DNA from: Pelomyxa schiedti
Lineage: Eukaryota; Protista; Evosea
Direction: 5' to 3'
Length of the DNA: 35,584 nt
Assembly (NCBI GenBank): GCA_020536535.1
Contig: JAHLWZ010000970.1
Location: 1-35,584 of the forward strand
Shown: positions 2,565-27,000 of the stretch, one piece after another
How the letters are laid out: every line of letters begins with the position of its first letter
Numbering within the stretch: the stretch's first letter is position 1
Position numbers and translations under genes: made by a program
The notes under the pieces: model-generated
Database searches by the model: none
The model's input: the letters and a program-made list of their open reading frames with translations, nothing else
Told to the model about the DNA's origin: nothing

Positions 2565-5207
2565 ATGGGTGTTGTCAAGATTTTTACTGTGTGCTTCTTG
2601 TCCCTGCACCTTGCTGGTTAGCCCCCCATAAGTGAAATGTAAAAATTGTGTGTCCCGTCCCATCTCACTCACACTTTTTCTTTTTTCCGCCCCGTTCCGC
2701 AATCAGTGTTGGTTGCTGGGGCACCAACATGTGGCCCTGATGTTACTCTGTGGTTGGCCCAGCAGATGGACTCGGCCAGGACTCAGACCGACCAGGTTCT
2801 GGCCTCAGGCGGCGACTCCTTCGTCGCCCTGCTGTCGAACACCTCGGGCTCAATGGCCTACTCCCTCAGGCCCAGCCTGTCGTACGCGGCCGAAACTTCG
2901 TGTCCGGCGGGAGTCGAACCCGCGACCCAGTGCGTCGATTCCACCGGCGCCGGCACGGTCACGCTGTGCGGGGACTTTTGCGTGACCCCAGATATAGCTA
3001 TTTTGATTGCTTATGGGTATGCCTCGGCTCCGTTGTCTGGAACTGCTCTGTTTGGCGCTATCTCACAAAACGCACTTTCTCCTCCAACTGCGGCGGCCGT
3101 GGCCGTACTTATGGGTGTGTACTTGAGGTCGAGATATACTGACGCCCTGCTGGCTGAAAACACCCCACGCATGTGCACCTTGTTGAAGGGCGAGAGGTTC
3201 AACATAATGCCAAAACTTCTATTCACTGGGATGTGTGGAGACATATATGCTCAGGATGCTCTTTATTCAGCAGAGGGTCTGGGTGGAATGACAATTGCTG
3301 AGTGGGAGAGCCAGAACAGCGCCGTTCTGTGTGACTTGACTGAAAGTTTGTTGTATACAATGAGGCCTGAGAGTATGGGAACTTGGATGTCCCTGGTGGG
3401 TGTAAGTGGATGCGCTGCATGTGCTTCTGTTTTCAATGCTCCCAGTTTGGCTCCTATTTCTCATGTTCCGATGGTGTGTAACCGATTTTTCCCCTGCCAA
3501 CTTATAACTGAATTCAGCAATCTCTGCGAGGTTTCGAATCTGGGTTAAAAGCAAGGGTTATTACCATTATTAAAAATTGAACATCAAATGTACTCATAGA
3601 GTTTAGGATGTAACAACTACCTGTGATTCATTTCCACGAACTTCGTCTGATTGGGCTACATGCAACCGTTGGGGAGTTGTAGTCCACTCTACTACCTCTC
3701 CAGCCGTTGATAAACGTGCATATTCAGTTCGTGCTGATGGAAATTGGTATTCTCATACACATGCACATATTCTGATAACTCTTCACAAGCCTCCTCGAAC
3801 AACTGAATTTTAAGACCCTTTTGGAAGAAATGGCAGTAATGGATTCAATATGGTATCTACCTCAATTATTCCTCGTCAAGCCTAAATGTTGTTCGAGTGT
3901 ACCTTCTGTTCTTGCTGAGTTCACATCACAACTGGAAGTCATTCTTGAATTGTGTGCTTGCCCCAGTTTTATTGAAATTGCAAGGCCACTACTTTCTTTT
4001 GGGCAAGTGTTGTGCAACTCACAGCCAGTATATACAAACGTGACAGGTAACAACTGTACCCAATACTACAGCTATTTACATGAATTTTTCCACAGGAGAA
4101 CAATGCTTTAAACAACTGGTGCTTAAGATTGTTGACATTCCCCGACTGGATCTTGTCATCCTTCCTGTTTGTATTCCCTGTGCGAGTGAAATCCTTGGAA
4201 GAGAAAACATGGGACTGGCATATGACATGATGTGCCAGATTCAAATGGATTATTGGGGGCCAACTGATAGCAGGTGAGGTTTCTCTTGTTATCCGAAAAC
4301 TCAAAACCATAGTTGCATGGGTGTGTTCAATGAGACACTTGGAGATCCAAGTATCCCTGCTTTGCCTTCTGACTGTTTGGTTCCCTTGACATCTTCTGGG
4401 GACATCGTTGAGGGGTGGGATTCCACGGATATTCCATCCTACTGTGCTGACATTTACGTTAAAATCTCAAATAAACTGAGGTGCTGCTGCAACATATACA
4501 ATGATATGCTGGAAATCCGTGGTTATAGAGCCGGTCTCGACGGCCTTGTGTGCTCTCCTTGCTCTGAAATTGCCTTCAAGATGACAATCGGAGTGTCTGG
4601 CTTTGATTGGGATCAGGCAACAAGCAACATTGGGGTTTACGCCCTTCAGCAGATGGCACAGGATGAATTATCACATCGCCTGCCTGTAGTTTCTCGCCCA
4701 GATTTTATCCAAGGGGTTACTATTGCCAAAGCAGCAGGCGGCAAACGCGATAACATTGATGCGTCAATTGAAGTTACAGTATGATCTTCCCGATTAATCA
4801 TTCTACTCAATGAACTCTCAGTATCAAACGATATACGATGATGCCGCAATTGAGGTTTTCGATGAGGTCGTCGAAGGAGATACCCTAGTGTATGTAAAAA
4901 CACCCAAATAGAAATATACTGCCAATTCAAATTCTAGTCATAATAATAATATTAGTCCCCAAGTATCAGTCAGGCACTCACCCATAATAGAGAAATGACG
5001 GACTTCATTTCCAACGCCACCGAGGTCTTTGACACAGTTGTCATCACCTCTGTTGAAATATCCTGCGAGTCACCAGACGCCTGCCCCTCGATGTCCAACT
5101 CGCTGTCGTCCTCATCAGTCCCGCAGGAACCCTCATCAGGGTCCTCGTTGTACTGCTCACTGGGATTTGCGGTTCTCTCTGTGTTGGTGGCCTTCCTTGT
5201 ATTGTAA
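2565..5207 (+). CDS. Cys-rich secreted, probably GPI-anchored surface protein of unknown family, multi-exon
   Basis: ATG 2565 plus an intron gives signal peptide MGVVKIFTVCFLSLHLA|VLVAG-AP. Long Cys-containing exons (2711-3528, ~4310-4779). Last exon has a Ser-rich spacer then a terminal hydrophobic tail (SSGSSLYCSLGFAVLSVLVAFLVL*). Some internal junctions unresolved. Confidence 0.7.
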
Positions 5208-5329: not shown

Positions 5330-6888
5330 CTACGCCAAAATACAGTTGTTGCCTGGAGCAGGCAGTTCGGGCTTGGTGTACATTGTAAGCAGGTTCCAAA
5401 CAAATTCAGGTCTGCCGGGTGGGAAGTTGTGCTTTGCTTCTAGTTCGTGGAACGCCACGTGCCACCCGTGGGATTCAAATGCCTTTCGGGCATCATGGCA
5501 TGGTTTCCGATTATCCTCTGTGCATAGTGAGTCCGGAGACAGAAAAATGGGGTACAAACCGTATAAGCCAGTGACTATGATGAAAGGGGTCTTTCTAGTT
5601 GGAATGAGGAACTTCCGCTCCAACTCGTCTTCAAGCTCTTTGCGTATTTCTTCTTCTAACCAAGCGTTTCCTACCTGCCAAAACGTCAGAAATAAAGGTG
5701 AGAAAACACGTGGTACCTCAACTCCTCCCATATGATTGCAAATTGCGGCAAAGCGTTGGTCAATCAGGAGTGCCAAGTCCGACATGAAAATTCCGCCATT
5801 CGAATGTCCACAGGCGTAAATTCGAGTGCCGTCCACAGGAAAAGCTTCAAACATGAAATCTAACACAGTGTTCACATATGCAATATCTTCATCTCCTGGA
5901 AGCCACACATGCTCTCCCTCACTAATGAATTTCGATTCGGTATGTCGTGATTCTCCAAAGACAAGTAACACTCGATCCCTTTCAGCTATTCGTTGCCAAC
6001 CACTGTCAGTTTCTGGCAGTTCAACGGGTTTTCCATCAGTTGTGCCGCGGACCAGCCTCTCCCGGTGATATTGTTGTTGCCAGAGGGATGATCGAGTTGC
6101 ATCTCTTTATGGAATGAGTTGTTAACAAGACAAAAGAAAAGAAAATAAAAATACTGTCCAGTTCCATGGAATAAGAAAATAAGCGGGAAAGGTCCAGTTG
6201 CATCGCGTGCAGCGGAAGTGGCAGTGCTAGTATGTTTCTCAGCAGCATGCGTTTCTGCTTGCGCCGCAGCTGCAGAATCCGCAGTGGATGTAGCTGACTC
6301 AGCTACTACTGCCGGGTCTGCTTGCTCCTTAACAGAAGGCTCCTTGGGCGAGTCTCCCACCGCATTCTTGGTTGTTTCTTCAGAAGACACGACCCGGCCC
6401 CCGAGTGGTTTCACAGGTTCGGAACCTTCGCCGGAGTTCACGGGGGCCAGGACCGTGTGGTCTTCCTCCTGCGTCGACTGCGTCGAAGTAGTGGCAGCAG
6501 TAGTAGTGGACGTTGTGGTCTGGGAGACTGGGTCCGTGTCATGCGCATGCTCCTCAGCCGCCGACGCATACGGGATTTTGTCGGGATTGTGGTGGCGATC
6601 TCGGACAGGGGCGGCGGTTGGGGTGGCGACGTTGCTGCTGCTGTTGTCGTTGTGCTCATCCGTGGACGACGACGACGACGATGATGGGGGCGGAGTGGCA
6701 TAATACGGGGATGCGCCTCGGCACGCGGAGCAGGGCTCAGTGAGGCTGTTGGGAACGAATACGACGAAGCGGCGGCGCTGCGTGAATTGGCTCCCGGTGA
6801 GGTGGAACTCGTGAGCAAGGCCGTGCTCGTGCCCTATGGGCGCTGCTGAGCGTTCGATTCGGTTGCCTCCCGAAACCCACGCACCCAT
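5330..6888 (-). CDS. Alpha/beta-hydrolase, LpqC / PHB-depolymerase-like esterase with a long low-complexity insertion
   Basis: RRFVVFVP...PLIFLFHGTGQDA (spliced), WQRIAERDRVLLVF, nucleophile elbow IYACGHSNGG, RFAAI, candidate Asp (EDNR) and His (AKHNFP). N-terminus MGAWVS; C-terminus CILA*. Confidence 0.8.
6665..6685 (-). repeat. (GAC/GAT)7 trinucleotide run encoding poly-Ser in the esterase insertion
   Basis: gacgacgacgacgacgatgat on +, read as TCN codons on -. Confidence 0.8.
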
Positions 6889-7095
6889 TAAAACTGAAAA
6901 GTTGGTGCTTTCTCAGAAAGGGCGTTTCGGTCTGAGAGCCAGTAGGCTCCGAACCCCGAATGGACTGAAGGATATCACCTACCTCGGAAATTCCTGTTCG
7001 TTGGAGAGTCGAGCTTCAACAAGATGTCGAGGATGACCCAATGCCCTTGATTGGATGACCTAACTTTGTCTCCCCTTTTCCCCTGGGAGAAGAAA

Positions 7096-8379
7096 ATGCA
7101 ACAACCAAACCCGAGCGGCCACGCAACCACGTGGTCGCCGACAACAACAGACACCACCGACTCGTTTGTAGTGGCCCCGACCCACCCCCTAACCCATTTT
7201 TATCTATCTTCGCCGTATACTCCCCTTCCGCTGGGAGCAGAGTGCGGGGACCTGGCCGACCAATGGCCCCCCCTCACCCCCTTGCTCCCTCCCCCGATCA
7301 GCGCCACTGCCACTGCCACTGCCACTGCCACTGCCATTGCCTCTGCTACTACTGCTACCACTACTGGCACGCGGACCACCACCGCCGAGGACAGCAGCGG
7401 CACCACCAGCCCGGACACGCCCCTCCCTTCGTCGGGCTCTCCTCAACAAATAGGTGTGAACAGCAATGGGGGCTCCATCCCGCCTGAACCCAACCAGCTG
7501 GGGTACCAGCCAAACTTGGGATATGGCCAACCGGTCCTGCCGATCCGAAATGTATGTTACTTTTATTACGGGATTTTTGGCATAGTGTTAAGATTCCTAT
7601 AGATTGTAATCCCAGGTCAGCTGGTGACCAACTACACTGCTTCCAGTGCTTCTCCACCGGACTTTCAGAGCCCTTTGGTTTTGCCCCCACTTCCTGCTTT
7701 GTTTTTGCCCTGTGACATGATGCCTGAATTCACTTCATGTCTGGAATGGAAGGATTTCCAGTGCGAAAAATTCATCAAGTGCTCACTACTAACAACCTCT
7801 ATTTGTGAACTGGAGAAAACCTGCCAGTGTGGAATTATCAGCTCCCTTGCAGAATGTAGTTTTCTTCTTCTACATTTGACACTCGTTAACATTCTAATTT
7901 TTGGGTACAGTTAAAGAATTCCATAGACGGGTTATCTTTTTAAAGGATCCCTCTGTTGCCTGGCCATTCCAAGTGTTGCCAGATCTCGTCTGTCTGGCAT
8001 ATTTTTGCAAGGTTGATAATTCTGGTTGGAAGGGAGGTGCATCACACACAAAGGGGCAAACAGGCATTCTTATGAAGCGCTACAGAGTAAAGGAGGTACA
8101 CCTTACTCAACTCCCACCATTTCCAACAGTTCACAGGATTACCACAAAGACATCATCACAATGAAAGGCCAACCCATGTGTCAAAGCGTTTCGGCTGTCA
8201 TGATATTCACCAAGGTTCCGATTCTTACATCTGTCCCAGTTCAGCTGAATTATGCCGTTCGCAATCTTGAGGACGTTAGAGACTTGGTACTGAGCATTAT
8301 GAATGCAGAAAGCAAGAAACACCACCATAAGCAACACAACCGCACTCACAAACACCGTCACCACACTCAAAAGTCCTAA
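7096..8379 (+). CDS. Hypothetical protein: Pro/Thr-rich N-terminus, Cys-containing folded region, His/Lys-rich C-terminal tail
   Basis: ATG 7096; GT-AG splicing joins ORF fragments 7051-7602, 7624-7914, 7901-8164 and 8026-8379; ends ...KKHHHKQHNRTHKHRHHTQKS*. No family recognised. Confidence 0.6.
7303..7338 (+). repeat. (GCCACT)5 plus one imperfect copy, encoding an Ala-Thr dipeptide repeat
   Basis: gccact x5 followed by gccatt, in frame as ATATATATATAI. Confidence 0.9.
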
Positions 8380-8491
8380 TTTATGATTTGGCTTTAACAG
8401 TTGGGAAAAAAAAACACCAAAGTGGGTGAGAAAAGTTGACTTGTGAAGGGGCACTACTATGTTCTATTTTAGTGGGCTGCAATTAAGGGGC

Positions 8492-10531
<2,040 letters not shown>

Positions 10532-11736: not shown

Positions 11737-14700
11737 ATGAGACAGATGGCGTGGTACACGCGTCCAGAGACGCCAACGACAGGGGGTGCGGAAAGTAGTG
11801 GTAGATCTGAGGGGGATGCGGTAGCGAAGGCAACGTCGCCTGTGGCGGGGTCTGGTGCATCGCCTCATCGGTCTTCTTGGGCGCACTCCCGCGGCAGATC
11901 TCGCGTGTGGAATCTCTTTCAAGTGGACGTGTACTTGATTTTGAAAGGGAAGCACGCTGCGGCACCGACGTCGGCCGTCGCGCCTCCTGCGAATTGCGAT
12001 AATTCGACTGCGGCCTCTAGCTCTGAATTTGGGCAACAACCGGGCACTTCGGGCTCCAAATTGCGCGAGGAGTTTGTTGCCAACGTTGCTGCTGACGAGT
12101 ATTCCTCTGTTGGTGACCTTTTGGCACTGTGCCATACTAAATTTGCGTTGCATTGTGCACTCCCAGACATGGAATCGTTTTCACTCTGTGAGTATTCAGA
12201 GTATGACACAGGTTTTGGCTACACTCAAATTGTTTGTTTCTGACTGGATATCTACAGATGTGTATCTCCATGTGTTGAACGTTGATGTTCCAGTAGTCTC
12301 TGTAGTACAAGCCAGGCAGAGTAAGATACATTGGCGCGCCACAAATTGTCGCTTTGTTCTTATGGAAAATGGTGCTGTCCTCAGTGAGGTACTTCAAACT
12401 TTGAAATAAATGAAGAAGTCATTTTGTCTAGGGCCACAATGGTTTCAGATCACCTACACTTACTTCGGCGCCGCCTTACCTCACACTTACTGATTCAACA
12501 GATATCGAGATTCCATCTCCTAATCTTTCCCATCCAGTACTTCAAGCTTCCTTCCCTACTGCTCCACTGTCTTCCCAATCAATTTCTCTTGAGCTTAATA
12601 GGAAATCTACCCCACCAGTAATAAGTAGCACAAAACCAACCGGAAAATCTCTCTTTCCAACACCCCGACCCACAGGACCTGTCCTGCCCCCCGCTCCCTC
12701 GCCACCACTACCCCCAACTGCCGTAATACCATCTCCTGCGCACTTGTCCACAGGCTACTGTATTATACAAACAACAACTATGCACTTCCTTTCTTGTGGT
12801 CTAGCATCCAAAGGAGAAGTTACACTTGCCAAGAGCCTGTGCAGTAGTGAATTGTGGTTTGTTGAGGCAACTTTCAAGAAAGGAAAATTTGGAGACATAG
12901 TACTCGTATCTCTTCAGGGGTACATAATGAAAAATACCTCCACAATGTGTTGACATTCTCCAGAAACCTGAAGCTATGGCTTAGGGCCCCAAAAAACCAG
13001 CACTTTCCTCTGTGTGATAGGAAGGTTCCTGGGAGTCTTGAAACATTCAAGGCAATAGCTGATCAGTCTGGAGGATATGAATTACAGTACCAAAAAACAA
13101 ATAATATAAAGCTATAAAAGCATATCAATGCGCGAAAAAATGCCAACAAAAAAAAAAGGACATCCTCTGGCTTGTTTCTTTCTGTGGACGATCTCCATCT
13201 AATTTGTGATGCACGGAAGCCCACATCTTTTAAATTTACCTACATGCCAGAACCTCCCCCTCCTCCAGACACCAACCCTTACAGCAGTATTCTTGTGGAT
13301 GCTGACTTTTTAGAGAAGGCTTTTCGACTTGAAGAAGCACTCTTATATTATGACTTGGCACTGACCAGGATTGACAAGGCTAGTACCCAGCTTAATGAAA
13401 TCAACATCCGGAAATCCAGACTCTTTCGCCTTCTGGGGAAGACTGCCAATGCCTTGCAATGTGCAGAGCTTTGTTCCAAGGATGGCATAAATTTTCATGT
13501 GTGCTATGCTTTAGCATTACGTGACTGCCGAAAACACGGTGCAGCAATTTCCGCATTTGAGGGTGCACTTAAAATGGCACCTAGTGACCAAGGACTTCAA
13601 ATATGCAAAACCGCGGAACTTGTTCAAATTGGGAGTGGTAATCCAACAACCTTATGGAGTAGTGTGCATTTGACAGTTCCATCCATAAAATCCCGTAAGA
13701 TGCTTATACCCCCCCAAGACTGTGGTGTTTCCCTCAGCTTGTGTGGAAGGCATGCTGACGCACTTGAGTGGTTTGATTACCAGCTATTGTTGACACCGGG
13801 CAATCCTTTTACTCTGTTGAAAAAAGCGTTGTCATTGCGTTTCCTGAGTAAAATCGAGGAGGCTTTCAAGTGCATAGAACAAGCGTTGGAGATTAGGCCA
13901 AGAGATCCTGATTTGTTGCATGAAAAAGGAGTTTTATTTTCATTTTCCAAGAGATATGAGGATGCCATTAAGTGCTTTGACCTCAGTCTACAGTTCAGAC
14001 CTAACCACCCTGACACAGTTGATGAGGTAATTAAGAACCCTTAAATAAAAATAGAACCGCATCATAGGAGAAAGTTTTTACTTTTCTTTCAGCGAAGGCT
14101 TGCCAAATCTGCACTTGAACAATCACAAACATCACTTCCTGAAAGTAGACCAGATGTTATACAACCAATGAGAACACATCACCCTGCTTGGGCACTTAGC
14201 ATTGTCCTAGAACAGGAAGCAATCTTCAAGTCCAGAATGTATTAATAAGCACAATTGACTTTTAGATTCCTTACTTCCACTTAGAAAATCACAGCAGTTC
14301 GCAGCAGTTATTGCTGTGGTTGGCTACTCTGGAACGGGAAAGAGCTCCCTCATCAATGCTGCTGCTCAACGAGAAGTCACACTGTTTGTTTCTTTTTTCT
14401 TTGAGTTGTCTCTTAGCTTCCTAGAGCCGGTGCTGGGAAACCAGTTACTGTAGAACCTTCTAGACATGTTATTGATCCCACATTGGTCCTTTATGAGACT
14501 CCTGGCACAGAACGAAATCCAGCAGAAGAGTTACCAGATATTCTGAGTGATTTATTTAAGCTTGCCGCAATACAAAATCCCCCAGAAGAAATTCATATGG
14601 TTTGGGATTACATCTTTCTTTCTTTTTGTTTGTGATATTATTAACTAGGTTTGGTGGGTGATATCAGCAGCTGATAATAGAATTGTACCCAAAACCGTAC

Positions 14701-17700
14701 TTCACATTTGCCAACAGTATTTATTAAGACCAAATGGCACCCGGATCCCTGTTCTTCTTGTTGTGAATAAATTTGTGCCCAATACTGAGGGGAATTCACT
14801 AAAAATGGCAATTGAGAGTGATGAATCTAGGGATTTCTTTTGGAGTGTTGTTTATACCAATGCTGTGCCTGATATAAATTTTGTTTCAACTGTTTACACA
14901 TGCCCCAAGTATAAACCCCTTGTCCTGATTTCCGTTGACATTTTTCCAGGTGTAATGGTACCCAGATGTGCCAGCAATCAAAAGAAAGCAAGTCAAAATG
15001 GAACTTCGCCTGTCAAGAGTGTAATATTATCTCTTCACAAGAAATAAAACCATACAATATTGGAGTTCTGAAAGAGGCCACCATTGGAATCCTTCCTGAT
15101 GTTGTCAAGTCTAGCATGAAGTTACAACGTATGGCAGATATAAAAGCAATTTATTCACAAACTGTGAAGCTTATTTCTAGCTGGATACCAACAGTAGTCC
15201 TCCAAATTCCTTTTGGCTGACTGCCAACATCACCTTTTTTACAGATTGGTGTTCTGAACGTTGCGCAATTTGAAGAAAAACTTACTCAGTATTTGGTTGA
15301 CATTGCTAAATTATTTGGGGTCAAACATTTTTCCTCAAAAGACGAACTTACAAACATGAACTTTGATATCCCAGTACTTGGTAACTTATCCTCTAACATT
15401 AATTTTAATCAATTGTTCAGAGTGTTTTTTCACAATACCTGGGACTATATGAGACATATTCTCCAGTAGTGTGCATCATAAGTTTATGCCTTTTGTGGGC
15501 TACACTGCTGAAACGTTGCCAAGAGTTGCTAATTGGAAGTGGTCCTACCTTCGGCTTCAGAATTGGAGATGTTGTTGAGAACCTTTCACTCTTCAATCAT
15601 TTGTTTATATCTGTGAAACCGAAAGTTGCCCTCTTCCTCCAGCACAAGGACTTGAATACCAACACTCCTATGGAGCAAACCCTAGAGCAGCTCTCTAATG
15701 AAGTATGCATTGAAGTCGAAAAGGCCTTAATTCCAGAGAAATTTCGTGACACTTCATTGAGTGGAGTTGGTGAAAAACCAGCAATTCAGAACCTTAATGT
15801 CAGTGATGAAGCATTCATAGAACAAACGTTGGACTCATGCTTTTCGAGGTTTTTCTTGAAACTTGTAATATAAGGGGGCAAAGAATTCACGTTTGTTCTT
15901 CATACAGTAACCTTGATATCTCCCCTGTGGATCTTGTTGGATTAGTGATAATGCAGCCAATAGAACAACCTACTGCTTCCCTATTAACCTTCCTCGACTT
16001 TTGTTTCAAAGTGGTTCAAACGGGAGAAATGCACCGCGTGGAGAGGCTTTTGTGTTTCTTGAAGGAGTGGGTTACCTTAATTCCAGGTCATTGAACCCCC
16101 CACTTTTTTTATCTGATAACTGGTTAGATGACTTCCAAGAACTCAAACTCAACCAACGACTTCTGGCCATACTCGCAATATCTGAAGAGCGCCATTTTAG
16201 AGTGCAGGCAATATATGATATATTAAAAGAGTCAGCTAGAAGTTGCACTACATCAGCCGCTATCACCTCAACGACTTCGGCGACATCCTCCGCCACTCCG
16301 GATTCGACGCGAGTCATATGGAAAAAGCTCCCAGCTGTATTAGCACCCCAGTACTATGTTGCCTCCCAATGGTGCTTGGTTGATTTTCATTTGTACACAC
16401 AAGTTGCCAAAAACCCACGGTCTTTTGTTTCAGTATGGTCAAATTATCTTGGTAATAACTTACAATTCAAGGAATACAGTAAAGAACGAGAAGCTCTAGA
16501 ATTAAGAATTGAACAAGAAGAGATGTGGACAATTACTCAAGTACTATCAGCCCCACTCGAACATAGAGTAGAAACAATCAAGGTACAACTGGCTCGATAC
16601 AATGCCATGTTTAATTTCTAGGTGTGTTTAGATCTCGGCATTACACTTTTGAGGCTCCAGAATTTTCAAGGTGCATGTGCAATTGCCTCAGCTTTTGCCT
16701 CGCCTATTTTACGGCCTATTGTACGTGCACGTGCTCCTGAGTTTATTGATGTAGGCTGGAAGATTATTTGTGAAGTAGGGTTTCTTTTCTTATTTCCTAT
16801 CCCTTTAACCTTCCCCAAGGAACTAGAGCAATTGTGGAGTCAATGTGATCCAGGAAAAAATAATGATTTCCCCAACTTGCCTCCACTATCAAATTGCTGT
16901 ATTCCACCAATAAAGAAGCTTTATACCAAATTCTTAGCATCCCGGTCCATGTCCCTTACGAAGTCTGTTAGATATGCGTTCTTCCGGAGCCTCATCTTGG
17001 AGATTTCCAAGTTATCATACTGTGGATGTGTATTCACCTAACTGTTACTCAGGTACCAATCGTTAAACATGACTGTCTATGAGTTTCCAGAAATGTCAGC
17101 TGGGTTATCGAGCCTCATTACCTTACCGCACTCGTCTTTCTCAGAGCTGGAGGCCCGAGCCTCTGAGTTTTACATTTCTGCTAGATTGGAATCTGGGTAC
17201 GTAGGAATTCCATTGGAAATTGTTGACCCCTTCTGAAGATTAGGGACCCACTACCTTTTTGGGACAAGACTGTCAGTTTGTATTCAGGACATATTCGAGT
17301 ATGTCAGACTATTAATTCGCAACTAATGGCAATATCAAAGAACCCCTCCCGCCATTGCCGTCACAAAGCAATTCGCTAATTCTATCTCACCTCTCTCTCT
17401 AAAAGCGATGAAAGATAAGTTGGCTTTTTCCACAGGTCAGTACTTGCATTGTTTTTATTGCATTTCCTTGTTTACTTTGATCAGCACGGATCACAGAGTT
17501 GTGTCTTAAAAGCTTGGATATTGGTGACATAGTGGCTGAGGATGGTGTGAAAAAGATCGTCAGGGCCGAGCTTATTGTCCGGTGTTATCTGGAAATATTC
17601 AGTTGGTGTCAGGTTTGTTCCCCTTTTCATTCATCTACTTACGTCAACAAGAATTTAGAGATCGAAGATAGTGTTCCTCCAAGGAAATGCACAGAAGCTG

Positions 17701-18242
17701 ACTCCATAGCACTTGAAAAACGCCAAAATTTACAGAATTCCAAACCTTCTGACTTTGAATTGGAACCAGAGTATTGGCTTGTTTGTTTCATCAGCGTTGC
17801 GTGAAACCTAATTCTCACACCAAATAGGGCCCCCTTTCTACAACCACAACTCTCAATCCGTTCCAGTCGGCCATAGAATCATTTTGCAGCATCAAAGGGA
17901 AGGCTTGCCCAACAGAAAAAGCCATGTGCATTACTCAAACAGCCCACGACATTGTTGCATACGTAGACCAGCTCTGGAGAAATGCTCCACCAGGTAGCAA
18001 AAAGATAACCATGACCGGTGATGCAATGGCCTCAGCTTTCACCTACGTACTGGCACGAGCCAACGTTCCACTTTTGTTCACAGAGCTGTTCCTTGCTCGA
18101 AGGTTTACCCACCCCTTTAACTCTCAGCACTCCTACTCACAAAATCATCCCTCCCTCCTCTAGTCTTGGCTGTAGTTCCGGCGAGCACGAGTACTACACC
18201 ACCACAGCCATGATGGCTGCCCTAACCTTGTTCCTAACCTAG
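11737..18242 (+). CDS. Large multidomain protein: RA/ubiquitin-like, Pro-rich linker, fascin-like beta-trefoil, TPR repeats, P-loop GTPase with Zn ribbon, RasGEF_N/RasGEF-like, VPS9
   Basis: RA-like: VAADEYSSVGDLLALCHTKFAL..ESFSLCEY..CRFVL. Beta-trefoil-like: PGSLETFKAI..GYELQ..SGLFLSV. TPR: EEAFKCIEQALEIRP; YEDAIKCFDLSLQFRP. G1: GYSGTGKSSLINA. REM-like: VERLLCFLKEWVTLIPDDF. CDC25-like: VASQWCLVDFHLY; LQNFQGACAIASAF. VPS9: PFQSAIESF..CPTEKAMCI..GDAMASAFTYVLARAN..GEHEYYTT. I could keep one reading frame across the domain junctions using GT-AG introns. Start could be 11572, 11737 or 11746. Confidence 0.8.
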
Positions 18243-18406
18243 GCACTGTACAACTAAAATTATCATTCCAGGCTTCTTTGGGGTTTGATTCCCATCAACC
18301 CTAACTCCCAACTCCTTTTCTTTGTTTTCATAATTTTCTTTTTCCGCACAATCACCAACCATCATCAAACAACACGACGGCCGACCCCAGAGCCCCACTG
18401 TCCTTC

Positions 18407-20586
18407 ATGCTTTCAGCCTCATCGCTGAATGAGGTGGAAGCCAACAGCATGGCACTGTTTCCCAACCAAACAGAACCACAACCACAAGACACTGCGCAAC
18501 AAATGCCAGTAACAACAGTAACAACAGGAACCACAAGTACGAATGAGGAGGCGTCGCGGGGTGAATTTGCACACTTCGCGTCGTGGAGTGAAATAAGGAA
18601 GGAGACTGAAATCCCCGTGAACGTTGGCGTAGACGGCGGTTGTGGTTGCGATTTTGGTGGTTACGACAACAGCAACAACCTCGGGGAAAGAGCTGTCAGC
18701 AGTGATTTTGTTGATCTAAGCTCGGAGGAAGTTGGCAGTGCCTATTTGTTGCACGAGGTACCTGGGAATGTGGCCTGCTGCAGAGCAAGTGACGCTGCAA
18801 GTCCCGGAATGGGAGCGGTGGCTCAGAATGCAATAGCTTCTGCTCCAGGCTCAAAAGCAAATGTAAATACAGGAGCTACTGCTGCAACTGCAACCGGGGA
18901 GAGCCCGAATATCCCCGTTTTGTATAAGAACTTTGCGGAATGCCTTCCGAATCCCCCCGTGGACACAGAAGAACCAGTCGATGACGTACATGCGAGGCTA
19001 ATGCACACATTTTCTCATTTCAGCCTCCATCGTTCACGTTCAAGTGCTGCCCAGCATCAGAGGAGGCTACAGGAAGAACAAGCCGTAAAATCTAAAACTA
19101 TTTCGAACGCTGAACAAACTACTTCGGCATCCCCTGGGGCCCAGATCGCTTTTGGTATGCCCTCTTCCACCAAAGGAATTTCGGGTTTATTGAACAGTTG
19201 GGTTATCAGACCCTGCTATGTATTCCACCCCAGTTGACCTATCTCAAAGCAATCTAGCCTGCTCAGCCCTGCACACCTTACAGTGCTTTGCAAGGCGGAT
19301 TGCAGAAAGTCAGGTGCAATCAGGTGGGCACTCATCTACTTGCAAATTCTACATTAACACACCGATCAAGGGTCTCTCTCAGGGAAGAATGCTGTTATAC
19401 CAAAGATCATAATTGATTTAGCCTCTGCTGCTATTGTACAGACGGATAACTGGCTTCCATCCGGGAGCAGTGACTCTCTCGACTCGACTGTTGCGCCTTT
19501 CTTAGACTTGTTTGATGCCTGTGATGCTCTATGGAACACTGAAATTGATTTAATGAGAGCTCCCCTCCCTTGGCCCGATCCTTCCAATGTCTTAGAGTGG
19601 TCTAAATGGAAACGGGCAGTGAGCTGGTTGTATGAATGGTGCTCGCAAATTGATGCTCTCCTGTCTCATGTGCGCACCTCGCTGGCAGAAGTTCCACCCC
19701 ATACACATTGTTGGAGATGGGGTAAGATTGAACTTCCGTGCGTACATGATGTAGAGCCTTATCCGCCTTTCTCCACAAATGTTGCTTCAACTGGGGTTCC
19801 CCTGCCCCAAGAAATTGCACCTCCACCCTGTGATGGGATCTTCTCTCAGGTTTTTGCACCAATTCCTTCTATTGTTATTTACTTTCAATAGGTTCCGGTG
19901 AAAATAGGTCCAAACAGTACAATACCAGACTTAATTGCCGCCTCAAATCGATACAGTTGCCGTATTTCCAACGTTTTAAATAAGTTATAAGAAATCCAGT
20001 ACTCCTGAAATTGGCCTAACTGTTCCGCAGGCTTCACAACCAAACATCAGCCGCTGTGGGAGTCAAGCTCATCAGTGATGAGTGTGCACATCTGAGGGAA
20101 ATGGTATCACAGTTAGAAGACACATTGGAGATACTTCCCGACCATGCGCATTTGTTGGTCCACAACGGTATGAATGTACAGAAAGTTGCCTTTACAATGA
20201 AGACACTCTTCATTGGTCATGGCTACATGTGTAAAAGTAGAGAACCATACCTAGGGAATACTTCCACCAGGTTACTTTCACAAAAAAACCCTACCTTGCA
20301 ACCTCACTATCTCGTTATCTCTTAATTTAACATAATAAGCAACAACTCACTCAGAATAAGGGCCCCCGTCGAAGTCGAGTACAAGGACATCAGACAGACC
20401 ATAATTCACATTCACCAGTTTCACCGGGACCACCCCTACCTCCCCGAGCACACACATTCTCTCGTACTTGTTCCCAAAGACCCAACACAGCAGCCTGAGC
20501 AATACACATCACTCCTGTTCCTGGGAGGGAGGCGCTCTGTTGGCCACTGTATCACCCAAACCCCATTGGAAAAACCCACATTTTGA
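18407..20586 (+). CDS. Hypothetical protein with a long disordered N-terminus and a Trp-rich folded C-terminal region, multi-exon
   Basis: ATG 18407 opens an ~800-nt first exon; later exons ...LPWPDPSNVLEWSKWKRAVSWLYEWC..., ...ECAHLREMVSQLEDTL...; stop TGA 20584-20586. No family recognised. Confidence 0.65.
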
Positions 20587-21011: not shown

Positions 21012-24000
21012 ATGAGGAGCCGTGGAGATCTTCGCGACTCTGTTGTATCAGCTACAAACATACCTCAACATGTAACCGACAGTTCACTAAACAAATCGGG
21101 GCTGCACGTTTCGAATGAGGCCCCTCCAACCACAATCACCACAACCACCTCTACAAAACCGCACACTACTTCGTGGGACAGTCGCGTGGCAACAGAAATA
21201 TCTCCAAGAGGCGTTACAAACAGCGCGGTAGCGCCCAGGCATAATGGTGAACAAGACCATGACGAAACGGCGGATGATTATTATGAAGATGCTGATGAAA
21301 TGGCTAGCACGGCCCCGGTGCATTCTTCTGCTCCAGAGAGCGAATATGCGGAGGACGATCTTATGTCGCTCACCACTGCCAATTCTTTGAGTGCCAGCTT
21401 TTCTGGTTCCTTGGCTTCTTCTGGTTCCTCTGGGTCCACTTCCACTACATCATCAGGGTCATCTTCCTTTGGATTGAGTGAATTGATGGTCCGCAGACTT
21501 AAGACCGGCTTGAATCACTGGTGCCAGCTAGCATGCTCTAAGAGCAGTTCTCATATAGCTCTGCCTTTGTGTATTTTTCAGTTTATTCAGGTAACTAATA
21601 ACTCGGACCTTTATTAATTCACACTGTTCCAAGCTCTTGAGCTTTGCTCTGGACCCTACCCTTGGATGGGAGGAATTAAACTCGGGTTGGACTATCTTCC
21701 TGAAAGTTATCAGTTTCACTCGAACCCTGGGAGTGAATTATAACTACAGTAACTATTCGCGTTTTCTCTTTGGAACTAATCTCTGTAAGAATCAATTTTG
21801 GCACTGGAAATTGCTTTCTCTGTGTATATGGCATGCCTTTGTCTTGTTGGAGTACTGGTTATGTGGCAGTACAGTGCAAATCTCCAATATGAAGGGAAAC
21901 TTGCATCCCTCCTCCACCTCGAAGTATACTCCCCATTTCCTCTCTGCCCATCCCACATACAAATAATCTTTCCGTAGGTTGAATTTTTCTCTACTGTATT
22001 ATATGCACCACTAGCTCATACAACATTGGCCTTAATCGGTTGTGGTGCAATATCTCCACCAGGGATGGATGCTTCTTGTAGATCAGGCACTATGGTTTTA
22101 ATTTGATGAATCTAGAATTCCCTCATTAGAAACTAGATCTCTCAATCCATTTTAATGTGTGTCTTATTGATTCTTGGGACACTGATTGCGTTTATAAGCA
22201 CAGCTTCTCAATATGATTTTTGTATTTCATCGAAACACCCTTTGGCACGGTTTCTATCTAGAATTGAAATTTGTCAGTTCCTCACTGTAAGGTTTTCTCT
22301 TTTTTCCTCAATTTTAATTTTCGCCCAGGTTTTGCTAGCCTCTTGCTTTACTCGTTACCTAAGGTACCCAGCTATCAGTGTTGCTGTCTGCCAAGGAATG
22401 GTATGGTTCAATGGTACTCTCAAGAGGTGATTTTCTCACAGGTTGCATTGGTGGTGTGCTTTGGATGTGCGAGTTGTAATCTATACATATTGTGGTATGC
22501 CCCGTATTACAAGTGGTGGGCAAACTACATGAAGATAGCCGGTTTCACCACAGTATTAGTTGCCACACCAATAGCTTTTTTCCATACTGTAAGTGGTCTT
22601 TCATCTTCTATCCCTTTTTTTTAACACTCTTCACTTGCAATTTGTGTCAGATTTTCCCTGATAATTCAACCAATATTCTCATTGCTGTTGTTTGCACAGT
22701 TGGGGTGGTACCTGTAATATGCTACTTTGGCACAATGACGTTCTTTTATATCACCAACCTACGCCTGAAAAGGTTCCTTTTTATTCCTTAGGATCTGTTG
22801 TAAACTTCTTTTAAGGAATTTGGGCAAGATTTTATACTCTGAGGAATCTGCAGACCAACAAGTCATAATAAATAAACTATCTCAGTCCCTCCGCTCTACT
22901 CATTTAATCGTCTGCCATCTATACTGGGACTTGACTTCCAAGGTTCTTTCTTTTTTGTGTGTGCACCATGTAATACATTCTGACAGACTAGTGCAACAAA
23001 TAATACTAGAGATGCTCTTGATACCGTTTCCCGTCTGCTTATGGCTGTTATCGAGTCACATAGTGGTCCCTATCCAGAAATTGTACAGATTCTTTCATTT
23101 ATTGGTCCCTCAATAATTTCTTTGCAGTTGTATTCTCTGTTTACATTGCAGCAGTCAGATGAGTTACAAACTGTGGCTATCCACATTCAGCGTGCACAAA
23201 ACTCTCCCCACCAGTGGCCTGACACAAAACTGTTAGTTACTCGGCTGGAGGAATACCGCAGAGAAAAAACCAGGGCATTTGATGGAGGGAATGAAGAAAT
23301 TGACCTTGTATGCTCCCCACTTCTTGTGGGTGGAATCTTAAAAAAATAACAAGGGATTCAAAGAAGCAGAGAAGCACCACAAGAAAGCCCAAGAAGGCTT
23401 GGCTATGTTTTGGCAGGTTCCTTACCGTTCTATTGTATTATTTTTTAAGGCTTCAAAGCAACTGTACTTACGAAACCTTGGAAGCCTACCTGATATTGTT
23501 GCAATGCTTGACAGTGCTGAAAAGAATGCAACACAGATTTATGAAAAACTAAAAAAAAGATTTCCCAAGTCTTCGAAAGTACTGCGACAGTTTGCATCAT
23601 TTCTGGAGCAGGTTAGCATCACAGGAATAAAATTAAGCCATTTACTAACTGCATGTTACTTTGTTTTCCACAAGGTCAAAAACGATCCACAGCAGGCCCA
23701 AGTTATGTATACAACAGCAGATATGCTGGAAGAAAGCACGGTTAATCACACTGGATTCTTTCCTTTTCTCATTACCCGAAGACGAGGCATCACAAGAATC
23801 GTAAACATTTCCGACAAAACCAAGTCGCACCGTTAGAGGATGTTGAAAGTGATGGTGACGCAACGAAATTGAAGCACATAGATCGTATACTTCCTCATTC
23901 ATAGAAGGGTCTTACTAATTGTCGTTATGCAGAAAGTACCGAACACCTTGCCCACACCGAGGTGAAGAGCACACAGCATCACAAGGCAATTCAGGATTCA

Positions 24001-27000
24001 CAGAAACTTCAGTGGTACAAAGATCACGTTAGCACGATGGAGAGCTCAGTTGTCAGGTTTTCTTGGACACATCCCTCGATCGTGCTCATTTCCTACACAG
24101 ACAACTTTATCTATCCATCTTTATTGTTCTAGCAGGTAACAGAGTTATTTAATAATGGTTTTGTATGACCTTTTCCCAGTTGTTCTGGTAAATACTACAA
24201 TTACTTATGCCTTTTCCCGCTGGGCTTTGAGGTCACTCTTTAATTGTCTTTATTTTCACTGATCTTACATAAGTGGTTTTGTTTTCGCCTACAAAGAAAC
24301 CGCAGCCACTTCCAACCTTACATCGTATCACAAGCATCTTTCTTTTCCTTGTTTTTTACTCACTATAGGCTTGTACCTTACCTCAACTACCTCGTAGAAA
24401 AGCAAGCAATTGGACTGAAACATCCAGAGTACAACCATTCTACAGCCCTGGCTGAACTCAAATCCATCGGAATGGCTTTCCAAGACATTGACAAAGACCT
24501 ATGTTCCAAGCCTTCCTTTCAGTTCTTCGGTAACATACATAATTAGATATCGATTCTGCAATGGGTAATGCTGTTGATTTTGGATTATGGACTCAGAAAG
24601 TGCACAATATTTCTACCTGGGATGAAGCCACCAAGACCCGCAGTTCCCTGATAGTGAGTCTAGCCTATCTCCTTGAAGAATACAGCCGGAGAGCCGTAAA
24701 TCTGGCGGATTCCGCTGACAATCACACGGACTCAATAGTATTTGAGTCTGATCCCGATTCTCGGTTTATGCTTGTGTGTTTCCAATTGTGCTACAATGGT
24801 GTTTATTTTTATTTCAAGGATAACGGTTACTCGGTTATTAGGCCCGCTCTTGAGCAACTTACTCATGCTTACAGGGCAAGTCAACTCACCATTTTCAACA
24901 CAACTCATAGTGAACCCAGGAATCCGTACTATCTCAAGTGAAGTCTTCAAGGCTTCTACTGGCAGTGTTACTTCCAGTTACTGTAATCATTGTCTCGACT
25001 TGTGTTGGTGTTTTCTTTCTGCGCTCGATTTATTTGATTCGAAAAGTAGACAAAAAACAAACTTGCAACCACACTCATCTGATTGAAGGAACGGCTTGAA
25101 GTACTTCGACTTTTTTTGTATCTATCTAGAAGTACAGTTCAGCACATCTACGAGTCATGTACAAAAAAGAATCAAGGTTTCACCGTTTTAGAAACACTTG
25201 TCTTGGTAACGTTGCACAGGCCTAGCAACGAATGCTTCTTTTGCGTCAATTGATTCTCGGGAATCCATTACTTCAGCAGAATTATCCCAAACTCAAGTAA
25301 ATTCCATCAAGATGAAATTCGTTACGTCAGTCACTTTACGGTGGGTTTAAGACAACAATTGCAGGTTTTTTTTTTAACACTACCTTTTAGTTTCCTCATT
25401 GGTGTTGGTGTCCTCCTGATATTCATTGTGGCTATTTCCACTTTTGCTATAGCCTCTCTTCATCAATTTGAAGGACCATTAGACTTGACTAGTGCCAGGT
25501 TACAACCTCTATACCCTCTGAAAATGCTAACCACCGAAGGATTTCAGAACGCTCAACTCTCCAGAGGGTGCATACGGCTGCCGCCTCTCTTATTGGCAGA
25601 GACTTCATAACCTGGGGTGACATGGAAGGTCTTCATCATTACTTGGGTCTAGGACTGCAATCATACGACGATGCACAAAACAAGACAAGTGGTATCACAA
25701 GGACATGGCATGTAGAGCTGGCCAGTGAATCTCTTCGGAGCCTTTTATTGTACAGAAATTGCACAGATATTGCCCTATCACACTGTGAAGGTCTTGAGGT
25801 ATTTTTTCTGCAAAAACGTCTCACTTTCAAACTTTCCTTAAGGAAATTGACAATATTTTCATCTCTGCCGCTGTATCACTCAATGTACGTTGCTTTCTTT
25901 ATGTGTACATCCATTCTCATCTTTTCTCTACAGGATATTCCAGATGTTGATGCAACTGTTGGTTGTGAACAATGGCAGACCATGGACCGAGTAGATCAAC
26001 TTGGACTTTGGCCATGGCACCTTGAGCTTGAATCCTCGCTATTGGAATTGTTCCTTAACCAACTTGAGCAGTATCAAGCAATTCTAACAGCGTTGTTTGC
26101 TGCCTCTTGGCCCATAGCTGCAATTGTTTATGCTGTTCTTCACCTTCCTCTGAAGCACATACGGCAACAACATTTTCACACTCTGAGGATGTTTTTGCTC
26201 ATACCCGTCGAAGTCATAGAGAATACCCCACAAATCAAGCACTTCTTAGAGACAGGAGAGAAGATGGACGCGACGGTGCAAATGCGAAAAATGCTGAGGG
26301 ATACTCAAACCAAAACTGAAAGGCTTATTCAAGCTGCCGCTGATGCTGTCATCATTGTTGATTTCTCGAATCTCATCATTGAAACCTTTAATACTGCGGC
26401 GGAGACAATGTTCGGGTAACTCTTCGTGTGCTAGGTTTCCTGGCTAACTGTTAAAAGATGGTCATCAAGTGAAATTGTTGGTTCTCATTTGGCACGCCTG
26501 CTTTGCAAAGAATGGCTAGAATCACAGAAGGTGCCCGGTGTCTTACTTTTCCAAATATTAAGTCTATTTTACAAAAGGAACACGCCAGTGAAAAGAACAC
26601 AGAAGCTGTTGGATTCAACAAGGAGGGCATTCAATTCCCGGTTCTGATATCTAAGTCTACAGCAGCCCTTGAAAGTAAAACAGTGAGAAAAAAAATTGTA
26701 ACCCTCACAGCTACTAGGTGGTACAGTCGCAATTCTCATTGTCCGTGATGTTCGAGAAATACGGCACGTTATTTTTCCTCCCTTCTTAGAACTTATTGGG
26801 TACGGTGCTAGGGGTTACCAGGAACTCCTGGAGCAAAATGAAAACCTACTGCTGAAGATGCTACCAAAGACTATAGCACAACGGCTCAAGAATTCCATAG
26901 CTTCTGCGAAAGATAAAACTCAACCACTTCTTATTGCTGACAGCCACCCCCAAGTTTCTTTAAATTTAATTCCATGTTTGTTCAAATTCTTCCTACCCAA

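Follow-up and report, generated by a model that had tools for sequence, protein, structure and literature searches.

The stretch of DNA considered here (the window) is the whole of contig JAHLWZ010000970.1 (35,584 nucleotides, assembly GCA_020536535.1) from Pelomyxa schiedti, an anaerobic, free-living archamoeba. Within it, the plus-strand interval 11737-18242 had been flagged in a first-pass annotation as one continuous spliced frame that joins a Ras-association-like (RA) domain, a fascin-like beta-trefoil, tetratricopeptide repeats (TPR), a P-loop GTPase, a RasGEF and a VPS9 domain in a single polypeptide. GenBank holds two plus-strand genes in the interval: one at 11737-13117, whose 415-residue product is without any Pfam family, and Pelo_14915 at 13574-18242, recorded as a hypothetical protein of 1,260 residues. 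The start and end of the flagged frame are the outer limits of these two gene models.

The continuous frame is borne out by a merged model of 24 exons and 23 introns, all of the introns common to paralogs, with a 5,415-nucleotide coding sequence, 1,804 amino acids and one terminal stop. Pelo_14915 was mapped exactly onto the window, where it makes up the C-terminal 1,260 residues of the model, and the N-terminal exons were guided by the paralog Pelo_15447. The merged coding sequence incorporates the three introns implied by the 415-residue model (46, 43 and 44 nucleotides, which account exactly for its length), an extra intron at 13087-13158, and the exons of Pelo_14915. The exons, all on the plus strand, are as follows.

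Exons 1-8: 11737-12211, 12258-12388, 12432-12919, 12964-13086, 13159-14026, 14093-14238, 14285-14383, 14425-14599
Exons 9-16: 14649-14908, 14950-15193, 15245-15373, 15421-15848, 15908-16086, 16128-16432, 16472-16582, 16622-16774
Exons 17-24: 16820-17010, 17053-17196, 17239-17298, 17341-17435, 17485-17612, 17652-17780, 17828-18102, 18164-18242

In the gene and its paralogs, introns are very short and vary little in length, at 39-72 nucleotides and mostly 41-51. Their borders show weak conservation beyond GT, and AAG acceptors are frequent alongside YAG. Introns from a simple gene finder proved wrong at 14909, 15849, 16087, 16433, 16775 and 18103, and were corrected with the RNA contigs and the annotated product.

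From N- to C-terminus, the predicted layout of the encoded chain is a ubiquitin-like (possibly RA-like) domain, a linker, a trefoil, a TPR array, a G domain, a zinc ribbon, a helical region, a REM-like segment with a CDC25 domain, and VPS9. The domain positions given in the first-pass annotation were all accurate to within about 50 nucleotides.

11899-12388, plus strand: N-terminal conserved domain (residues 55-202), a possible ubiquitin-like/RA-like beta-grasp
12432-12740, plus strand: low-complexity Pro/Ser-rich linker (residues 203-305)
12741-13249, plus strand: single fascin-like beta-trefoil (residues 306-436), split by introns 12920-12963 and 13087-13158
13289-14026, plus strand: TPR array (residues 450-695), from Pfam TPR models
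14210-14959, plus strand: Era/HflX-type (MMR_HSR1) P-loop GTPase domain, from Pfam MMR_HSR1
14322-14345, 14492-14506 and 14766-14777, plus strand: motifs G1 GYSGTGKS, G3 YETPG and G4 NKFV of that domain, from the paralog alignment
14901-15022, plus strand: zinc ribbon CPKC...CQEC, of the form CxxC...CxxC (residues 920-946), from the paralog alignment
15023-15848, plus strand: conserved alpha-helical region of about 240 residues, predicted helical at low confidence
15908-17269, plus strand: REM-like segment (15908 to about 16250) and CDC25-homology RasGEF domain (about 16346-17269), from Pfam RasGEF and a PDB profile
17429-18239, plus strand: helical region and C-terminal VPS9 domain, the Pfam VPS9 part at 17864-18221
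18014-18031 and 18183-18203, plus strand: putative Asp finger in TGDAMA, and Tyr/Thr in EHEYYTT, from the Rabex-5 alignment

Probable continuity of the gene

Judged by protein comparison, the locus belongs to a set of three P. schiedti paralogs. The other members, Pelo_15447 (1,805 residues, 74% identical to Pelo_14915) and Pelo_12652 (1,892 residues, 49% identical), are each annotated as a single gene, and a single polypeptide is therefore strongly favoured in the window as well. A tblastn comparison of Pelo_15447 with the window gave collinear matches over 11896-18239, uninterrupted over the annotated gap between the two GenBank genes. All 23 introns of the merged model are common, in position and phase, to Pelo_15447 and Pelo_12652.

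The two readings of the locus diverge at one unannotated intron.

13087-13158, plus strand: intron of 72 nucleotides with borders aca/GTACC...AAG/gac, from paralog conservation

The borders at this place in Pelo_15447 (acg/GTACC...AAG/gac) are near-identical to those of the window, and introns of the same position and phase lie at 5409-5458 of the Pelo_15447 locus and at 4491-4530 of the Pelo_12652 locus (JAHLWZ010000852.1). The stop at 13115-13117 that ends the 415-residue model arises because this intron is read through; it removes the third blade of the beta-trefoil, and the annotated ATG at 13574 falls within a TPR repeat (Pfam TPR_14, residues 127-161 of the piece 13118-14041). The "intergenic" segment 13159-13573 is open and 62% identical to Pelo_15447, with a proportion of nonsynonymous differences (pN) of 0.22 against a saturated synonymous proportion (pS) of 0.78. 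By these values it is under purifying selection, much like the flanking trefoil and TPR exons. Paralog collinearity, intron conservation and purifying selection are thus what argue for continuity across 13087-13158, and we consider it very probable that the locus is one gene and that the GenBank split is wrong.

Evidence from reads comes from four public runs, three of genomic DNA, which say nothing on splicing, and one of a transcriptome. One transcriptome contig of 3,664 nucleotides starts at 13353, which is 221 nucleotides upstream of the annotated ATG, and confirms at least 15 of the 19 downstream introns of the model as GT..AG joints, each joint listed being an intron of the Pelo_14915 model. 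A second transcriptome contig is spliced at 18103-18163. The first-pass annotation had named two places where the frame might break into separate genes. The one at 15370-15420 is cleared by the RNA-confirmed intron 15374-15420; the one at 13090-13160 is not bridged by RNA.

The alternative is that two separate genes exist as annotated, one for a 415-residue ubiquitin-like and trefoil protein and the other for a 1,260-residue TPR-GTPase-RasGEF-VPS9 protein, through fission of an ancestral gene or use of an internal promoter. What counts against a single gene, and for this alternative, is that the GenBank annotators called two genes here, that no transcriptome contig covers 13100-13299 and neither read nor contig bridges the disputed intron, and that transcriptome depth is about 2 on 12700-13099 versus about 20 downstream, a roughly tenfold difference that also fits an independent downstream transcript. 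The start of the long RNA contig at 13353 points the same way. Between that start and 13574 there is no in-frame ATG, and this too has been set down in favour of two genes. The records do not give the type of library. If its cDNA was 3'-biased, an mRNA of 5.4 kb should be poorly covered at the 5' end, and 3'-biased single-cell cDNA would thus give the same low upstream depth from one long message. A separate or additional shorter transcript is possible, and both a long and a short isoform could be made. Set against two genes are the open, selectively constrained sequence of 13159-13573 and its identity to the paralog, the trefoil blade and TPR repeat that the split would cut, and the conservation of the skipped intron in position, phase and border sequence in both paralogs. 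We regard two separate genes as distinctly unlikely.

Joining of unrelated genes by misassembly or misannotation has also to be weighed, since amplified single-cell DNA is prone to chimeras. The genome is a product of single-cell genomics, as the title of its report states (PMC8887013). In all three genomic runs, however, DNA contigs cover the entire 6 kb unbroken, with few differences or none, the same domain order recurs at three separate loci with its core also on an unrelated metagenome contig, and a single spliced RNA contig connects the TPR array with the helical region that precedes VPS9. A chimera is effectively refuted. Single-base differences between the window and contigs from the same sample (one DNA run and the transcriptome) were seen at 12746 (G>A), 13981 (C>T), 15127 (A>G) and 15265 (G>A); because some are common to the DNA and the RNA run, variation between alleles or between cells seems a better explanation than editing.

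In Pelo_15447 itself, the annotated first intron (4416-4504 of its locus) is 89 nucleotides, long for this genome. A frame within its 3' part reads DVFVYVLEGG, which may be compared with DVYLHVLNVD in the window and DVYFHKLDGD in Pelo_12652. The acceptor of this intron is probably over-called, leaving about 7 residues missing from the GenBank protein.

Domains along the chain

The domain identities that exceed their thresholds are direct results of the analysis, as are the gene structure and the conservation of the key VPS9 residues. Pfam searches of Pelo_15447 and Pelo_12652 returned the same domain set as Pelo_14915, save for a sub-threshold RasGEF in Pelo_12652. The TPR, P-loop GTPase and VPS9 calls of the first-pass annotation all score above Pfam gathering scores. 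For the TPR array, the piece 13118-14041 matched TPR_1 at 54.3 bits (8.2e-15), TPR_2 at 53.3 bits (1.5e-14), TPR_8 at 48.5 and TPR_14 at 36.3. TPR_1 on Pelo_14915 gave 36.5 bits, above the gathering score, and a phmmer search of PDB with Pelo_14915 returned TPR proteins only (TTC7B, NAA15).

The C-terminal VPS9 domain (PF02204) was matched in all three paralogs, at 29.0 bits in Pelo_14915 (residues 1156-1254), 28.0 in Pelo_15447 and 29.1 in Pelo_12652, versus a cut-off of 27. When aligned by HMMER to Rabex-5 (1txu, 2ot3), TGDAMA places its Asp opposite the first Asp of ADDFLP, and EYY-T lines up with GYYFT; where Rabex-5 has the Pro of DDFLP, the window protein has Ala. The aligned Rabex-5 residues are those we take to be the Asp finger D313, Y354 and T357. 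The Asp, Tyr and Thr are invariant in the three Pelomyxa paralogs, and the position of the stop that closes the VPS9 end is conserved in them.

For the segment called REM plus CDC25-like RasGEF in the first-pass annotation, the RasGEF half held and the REM half is less certain. RasGEF (PF00617) matched Pelo_14915 at 32.6 bits versus a cut-off of 23.1 (residues 782-876, model positions 2-104 of 181) and Pelo_15447 at 28.2 bits (positions 2-137 of 181). The match appears on the spliced product; Pfam run on single exons missed it entirely. A paralog profile of the region found RalGPS1 in PDB at E 3.2e-6, followed by SOS2, Cdc25 and RasGRP2 at 0.03-0.1, and a language-model search grouped the stretch 16622-17008 with RasGEF clusters (0.95; 205 features in common). 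RasGEF_N (PF00618) gave no match at E <= 1 on Pelo_14915. The weak SOS2 alignment (E 0.03) reaches the segment upstream of the CDC25 domain, and it is this alignment, together with position, that suggests a REM-like element there.

The internal G domain was recognized by MMR_HSR1 (PF01926) on Pelo_14915 at 32.0 bits versus a cut-off of 21.9, over residues 209-332 and the full model (2-113). NCBIfam matches to HflX, Era and YlqF came at about 5e-6, and the paralog profile searched against PDB placed HflX and RbgA at 0.02 within a group (HflX, RbgA, GIMAP4, EngA, IIGP1) ranging over 0.02-0.2. G1, GYSGTGKS, is a normal P-loop/Walker A. The canonical G3 DxxG and G4 [NT]KxD are replaced in the three paralogs by YETPG/YESPG and NKFV/NKFI, and because the Asp of G4 is lost, the guanine specificity of this domain is uncertain. 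The four cysteines of the zinc ribbon that follows are invariant in the three paralogs and gave weak matches to zinc-ribbon families; this reading is created by the RNA-confirmed intron 14909-14949. The helical region at 15023-15848 is 80% identical to Pelo_15447, with a pN of 0.10, and nothing meaningful was found for it in Pfam at E <= 10.

Near the N-terminus, the domain at residues 55-202 is conserved throughout the three paralogs; a variable low-complexity insert separates its first two predicted strands, and its pN is 0.34 against a saturated pS of 0.77. The first-pass annotation called it Ras-association-like, a call that Pfam and PDB do not back: four cuts of the paralog domains matched no Pfam family, RA/RBD included, at E <= 10, and a PDB profile search gave chance-level monellin matches only (E about 2). 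Its language-model neighbours at 0.85-0.87 (Kindlin_2_N, FERM_f0, PI3K_p85B, RA and Plexin RBD) are all of the ubiquitin-like class and serve as a lead only. The domain is possibly ubiquitin-like, and RA is no more than a lead for it. The linker that follows is the least conserved segment of the chain (41% identity, pN 0.42) and is probably disordered.

The trefoil had been described as fascin-like and actin-crosslinking. The fold is supported: the paralog profile found the CBM92 "bacterial fascin-like domain" in PDB (7zoh at E 1.2e-5, 7zoi at 1e-4) as well as IL-33 (0.01), and the CBM92 matches run through two of the internal repeats of CBM92. Language-model neighbours at 0.90-0.93 were the fascin, FRG1, ricin-B and I66 trefoil families, with Fascin, FRG1 and DUF7910 clusters at 0.90-0.92. 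Pfam gave no match at E <= 10, Fascin included. "Bacterial fascin-like domain" is an earlier name for CBM92 modules, and human fascin served as the search model when one of their structures was solved (PMC11039641). CBM92, the best profile match, and fascin resemble the window trefoil in being beta-trefoils with three repeats (PMC11039641). Given the profile matches and the trefoil neighbours, "fascin-like beta-trefoil" is a fair label for the fold. No result links the protein to actin. Fascin bundles actin with four tandem trefoils, whereas the window protein has one, the only one between linker and TPR array, and a role as actin cross-linker was rejected on that ground. A CBM92-type sugar binder was likewise rejected, the sugar-binding "WExF" motif being absent (by inspection, ELWF, LETF and SFKF stand at the corresponding places). 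With a single trefoil and no WExF, neither actin bundling nor sugar binding follows.

Distribution and precedent

A phmmer search with the REM/CDC25 exon against 1.84 billion representatives retrieved only Pelo_14915 and a 214-residue metagenomic fragment, with no canonical RasGEF. Word-indexed searches with the C-terminal 1,101 residues, the N-terminal 450 residues of Pelo_15447 and the paralog profile found Pelomyxa paralogs only, within the limits that length and shared words place on such searches. The metagenomic fragment sits on a 69-kb eukaryote contig of 40% GC (ENA ERZ21831265, ctg79110l), where tblastn revealed at about 6435-10283 a collinear core of G domain, zinc ribbon, helical region, REM/CDC25 and VPS9. 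In this homolog G3 reads YESPG and G4 reads SKFC, the same ExxG and xKF pattern as in Pelomyxa, and the VPS9 and RasGEF Pfam matches are sub-threshold. Immediately upstream lies a minus-strand Tau95_N gene, so that the N-terminal modules have no space there and appear to be lacking. The range of the family seems to be a single poorly tractable organism plus one metagenomic relative.

The first-pass annotation knew of no protein with its six domains. That holds for the whole set, which was found in no protein outside the three paralogs; the full combination seems undescribed; parts of it, taken in pairs, are on record. In the main texts of the literature no described RasGEF-VPS9 fusion was found, and the main text of a eukaryote-wide Vps9 survey (PMC6032885) makes no mention of RasGEF or TPR. 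Pairwise combinations appear in one supplementary table, Table S1 of Herman 2018 (PMC6032885): Aurantiochytrium limacinum 136168 as "RasGEF, Vps9"; Phytophthora sojae 128587 as "PH, Vps9, Ank, RasGEF"; Vannella Van7 as "TPR, Vps9"; Mayorella Mayo8 as "P-loop NTPase, Vps9"; Dictyostelium discoideum DDB0233291 as "PX, P-loop NTPase, Vps9"; and a Sexangularia protein as "Vps9, ubiquitin-like". Being listed there, the pairwise fusions are already known as catalogue entries.

The two stramenopile proteins, A. limacinum 136168 and P. sojae 128587, carry the same two GEF (guanine nucleotide exchange factor) domains on one chain, but they belong to another supergroup and have other accessory domains, with no GTPase, zinc ribbon, TPR or trefoil listed in Table S1. 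They appear only in a supplementary table, and are likened to the window protein by domain listing. DDB0233291, Mayo8 and Van7 are of the same supergroup as Pelomyxa and pair Vps9 with a P-loop NTPase or TPR, with no RasGEF listed; length-limited searches with the window protein did not retrieve these amoebozoan P-loop NTPase plus Vps9 and TPR plus Vps9 proteins.

RIN1-3 have the layout SH2-RH-VPS9-RA, in which a recognisable Pfam RA lies C-terminal to VPS9. The first-pass annotation drew on them as precedent. Their VPS9 domain shares one chain with a Ras-binding module of ubiquitin fold, as VPS9 and a candidate domain of that kind may do in the window protein; there, however, the candidate domain is N-terminal and without RA profile match, and RIN proteins are without RasGEF, GTPase, TPR or trefoil. 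The Dictyostelium Roco protein GbpC combines a Roc GTPase with COR, kinase, RasGEF and cNB domains, for which intramolecular signalling has been proposed. It shares with the window protein an amoebozoan origin and the presence of its own G domain plus REM and CDC25 on one chain. The G domain of GbpC is Ras-like (Roc) and a plausible CDC25 substrate, whereas that of the window protein is Era/HflX-like rather than Ras-like, which makes intramolecular GEF action unlikely there; GbpC is also without VPS9.

Alsin (ALS2) is built of RCC1-like, DH-PH RhoGEF and MORN elements with a C-terminal VPS9 (PMC6032885). Like the window protein it bears two GEF domains for different GTPase families on one chain, with VPS9 last, but its second GEF is a Dbl-type RhoGEF and not CDC25, and it is without internal GTPase, TPR or trefoil. 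GAPVD1/RME-6, which joins RasGAP and VPS9, is present in Amoebozoa (PMC6032885). Here too a regulator domain for the Ras family is fused to VPS9, but it is a Ras GAP and not a Ras GEF, of opposite sign in Ras regulation, and the other modules are absent.

Possible function and neighbouring genes

Taken together, it is likely that the locus encodes one 1,804-residue protein, mis-split by GenBank and one of three paralogs, that would work as a scaffolded dual exchange factor; the biochemical activities of its domains, and whatever coupling exists among them, we infer. Through the conserved aspartate finger, the VPS9 domain would activate a GTPase of the Rab5/21/22 class, and a Ras/Rap-class GTPase would be the target of the CDC25 module. 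The TPRs and the modules N-terminal to them may serve in recruitment or autoinhibition, and the internal G domain, without its guanine-specifying Asp, might be a regulatory or structural nucleotide-binding module. We lean somewhat towards an active VPS9 domain on a Rab5-class GTPase; for the CDC25 domain, activity on a Ras/Rap-class GTPase is a close call that tilts slightly to the doubtful side.

Several results weigh against this reading. The VPS9 scores are 1-2 bits over the cut-off, the comparison with Rabex-5 in PDB is weak (E 0.6), and the ctg79110l homolog has Asn at the position of the VPS9 Asp finger. The RasGEF match takes in the N-terminal 104-137 of 181 positions and leaves the C-terminal hairpin half unaligned to the family model, and Pelo_12652, at 17.9 bits, is below the cut-off of 23.1, which makes the catalytic competence of CDC25 uncertain; the unaligned remainder is conserved among the paralogs. 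AlphaFold2 models were unusable, both for the N-terminus of a paralog (450 residues, 7-row alignment, mean predicted local distance difference test score 36.5) and for residues 150-1260 of Pelo_14915 (4-row alignment, mean 37.2).

The unaligned hairpin half, the narrow VPS9 margin and the Asn of ctg79110l, with the non-canonical G3 and G4 and the failure of the phmmer search to return any canonical RasGEF, are what one would cite for a single polypeptide with degenerate GEF and GTPase domains, a non-catalytic scaffold that binds small GTPases or other partners without nucleotide exchange. All domains, however, are under strong purifying selection (pN 0.10-0.18), the VPS9 surface retains its Asp and Tyr/Thr in each of the three Pelomyxa paralogs, and the P-loop and the odd G3 and G4 are invariant across the paralogs and similar in ctg79110l, which suggests a retained nucleotide-dependent function rather than decay. 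A degenerate scaffold is thus unlikely, if less so than two separate genes, and a dual exchange factor is preferred.

The first-pass annotation went further, to a relay that reads active Ras at actin-rich cups and activates Rab5. No evidence was found for it: the RA call is a lead, the trefoil is single, and the C-terminal half of the RasGEF is unaligned; a Ras/actin/Rab5 relay is speculation. A version fitted to the domains found here would be an Archamoeba-specific, self-contained small-GTPase relay, in which a ubiquitin-fold domain takes Ras input, the trefoil binds membrane or cortex, and an atypical nucleotide switch (possibly not guanine-specific) gates a Ras/Rap GEF and a Rab5-class GEF. 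We hold this to be quite improbable. If true, one polypeptide would couple signalling to maturation of the early endosome or phagosome.

Should the long model be right, the GenBank locus is to be merged and Pelo_15447 needs a small acceptor-site correction. A Ras-family GEF, a Rab5-family GEF and a nucleotide-binding module with unusual motifs would then lie on one chain, and a giant anaerobic amoeba that feeds by phagocytosis would provide a Ras and Rab5 counterpart to alsin, the well-known dual GEF that ends in VPS9. In addition, the Era/HflX G domain of the family is a conserved ExxG/NKF variant, and its nucleotide specificity is testable. Its significance is limited by the narrow range of the family, the catalogued pairwise combinations, and the lineage-specific shuffling of GTPase regulators that is common in Amoebozoa.

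Some features of the surrounding DNA may be added. A gene for a 226-residue small GTPase (Pfam Ras and Roc) lies at 1686-2836 of JAHLWZ010000852.1, 165 nucleotides upstream of Pelo_12652 and on the same strand; it could be a candidate partner or a coincidence, and the window and the Pelo_15447 locus are without such a neighbour. In the window, an unannotated open stretch of 310 codons at 18305-19237 on the plus strand falls between the stop of the gene described here and the next annotated gene (19218-20586, 380 residues). It contains an ATG-initiated open reading frame at 18407-19237 for 276 residues of low-complexity, Ser/Thr/Ala-rich sequence, and may be a 5' extension of the gene at 19218-20586. 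Further downstream, an annotated neighbour at 21012-24242 and beyond on the plus strand encodes a protein of 1,718 residues with TPR_TmcB, PAS and guanylate cyclase Pfam families, which is another large signalling fusion in the same window.

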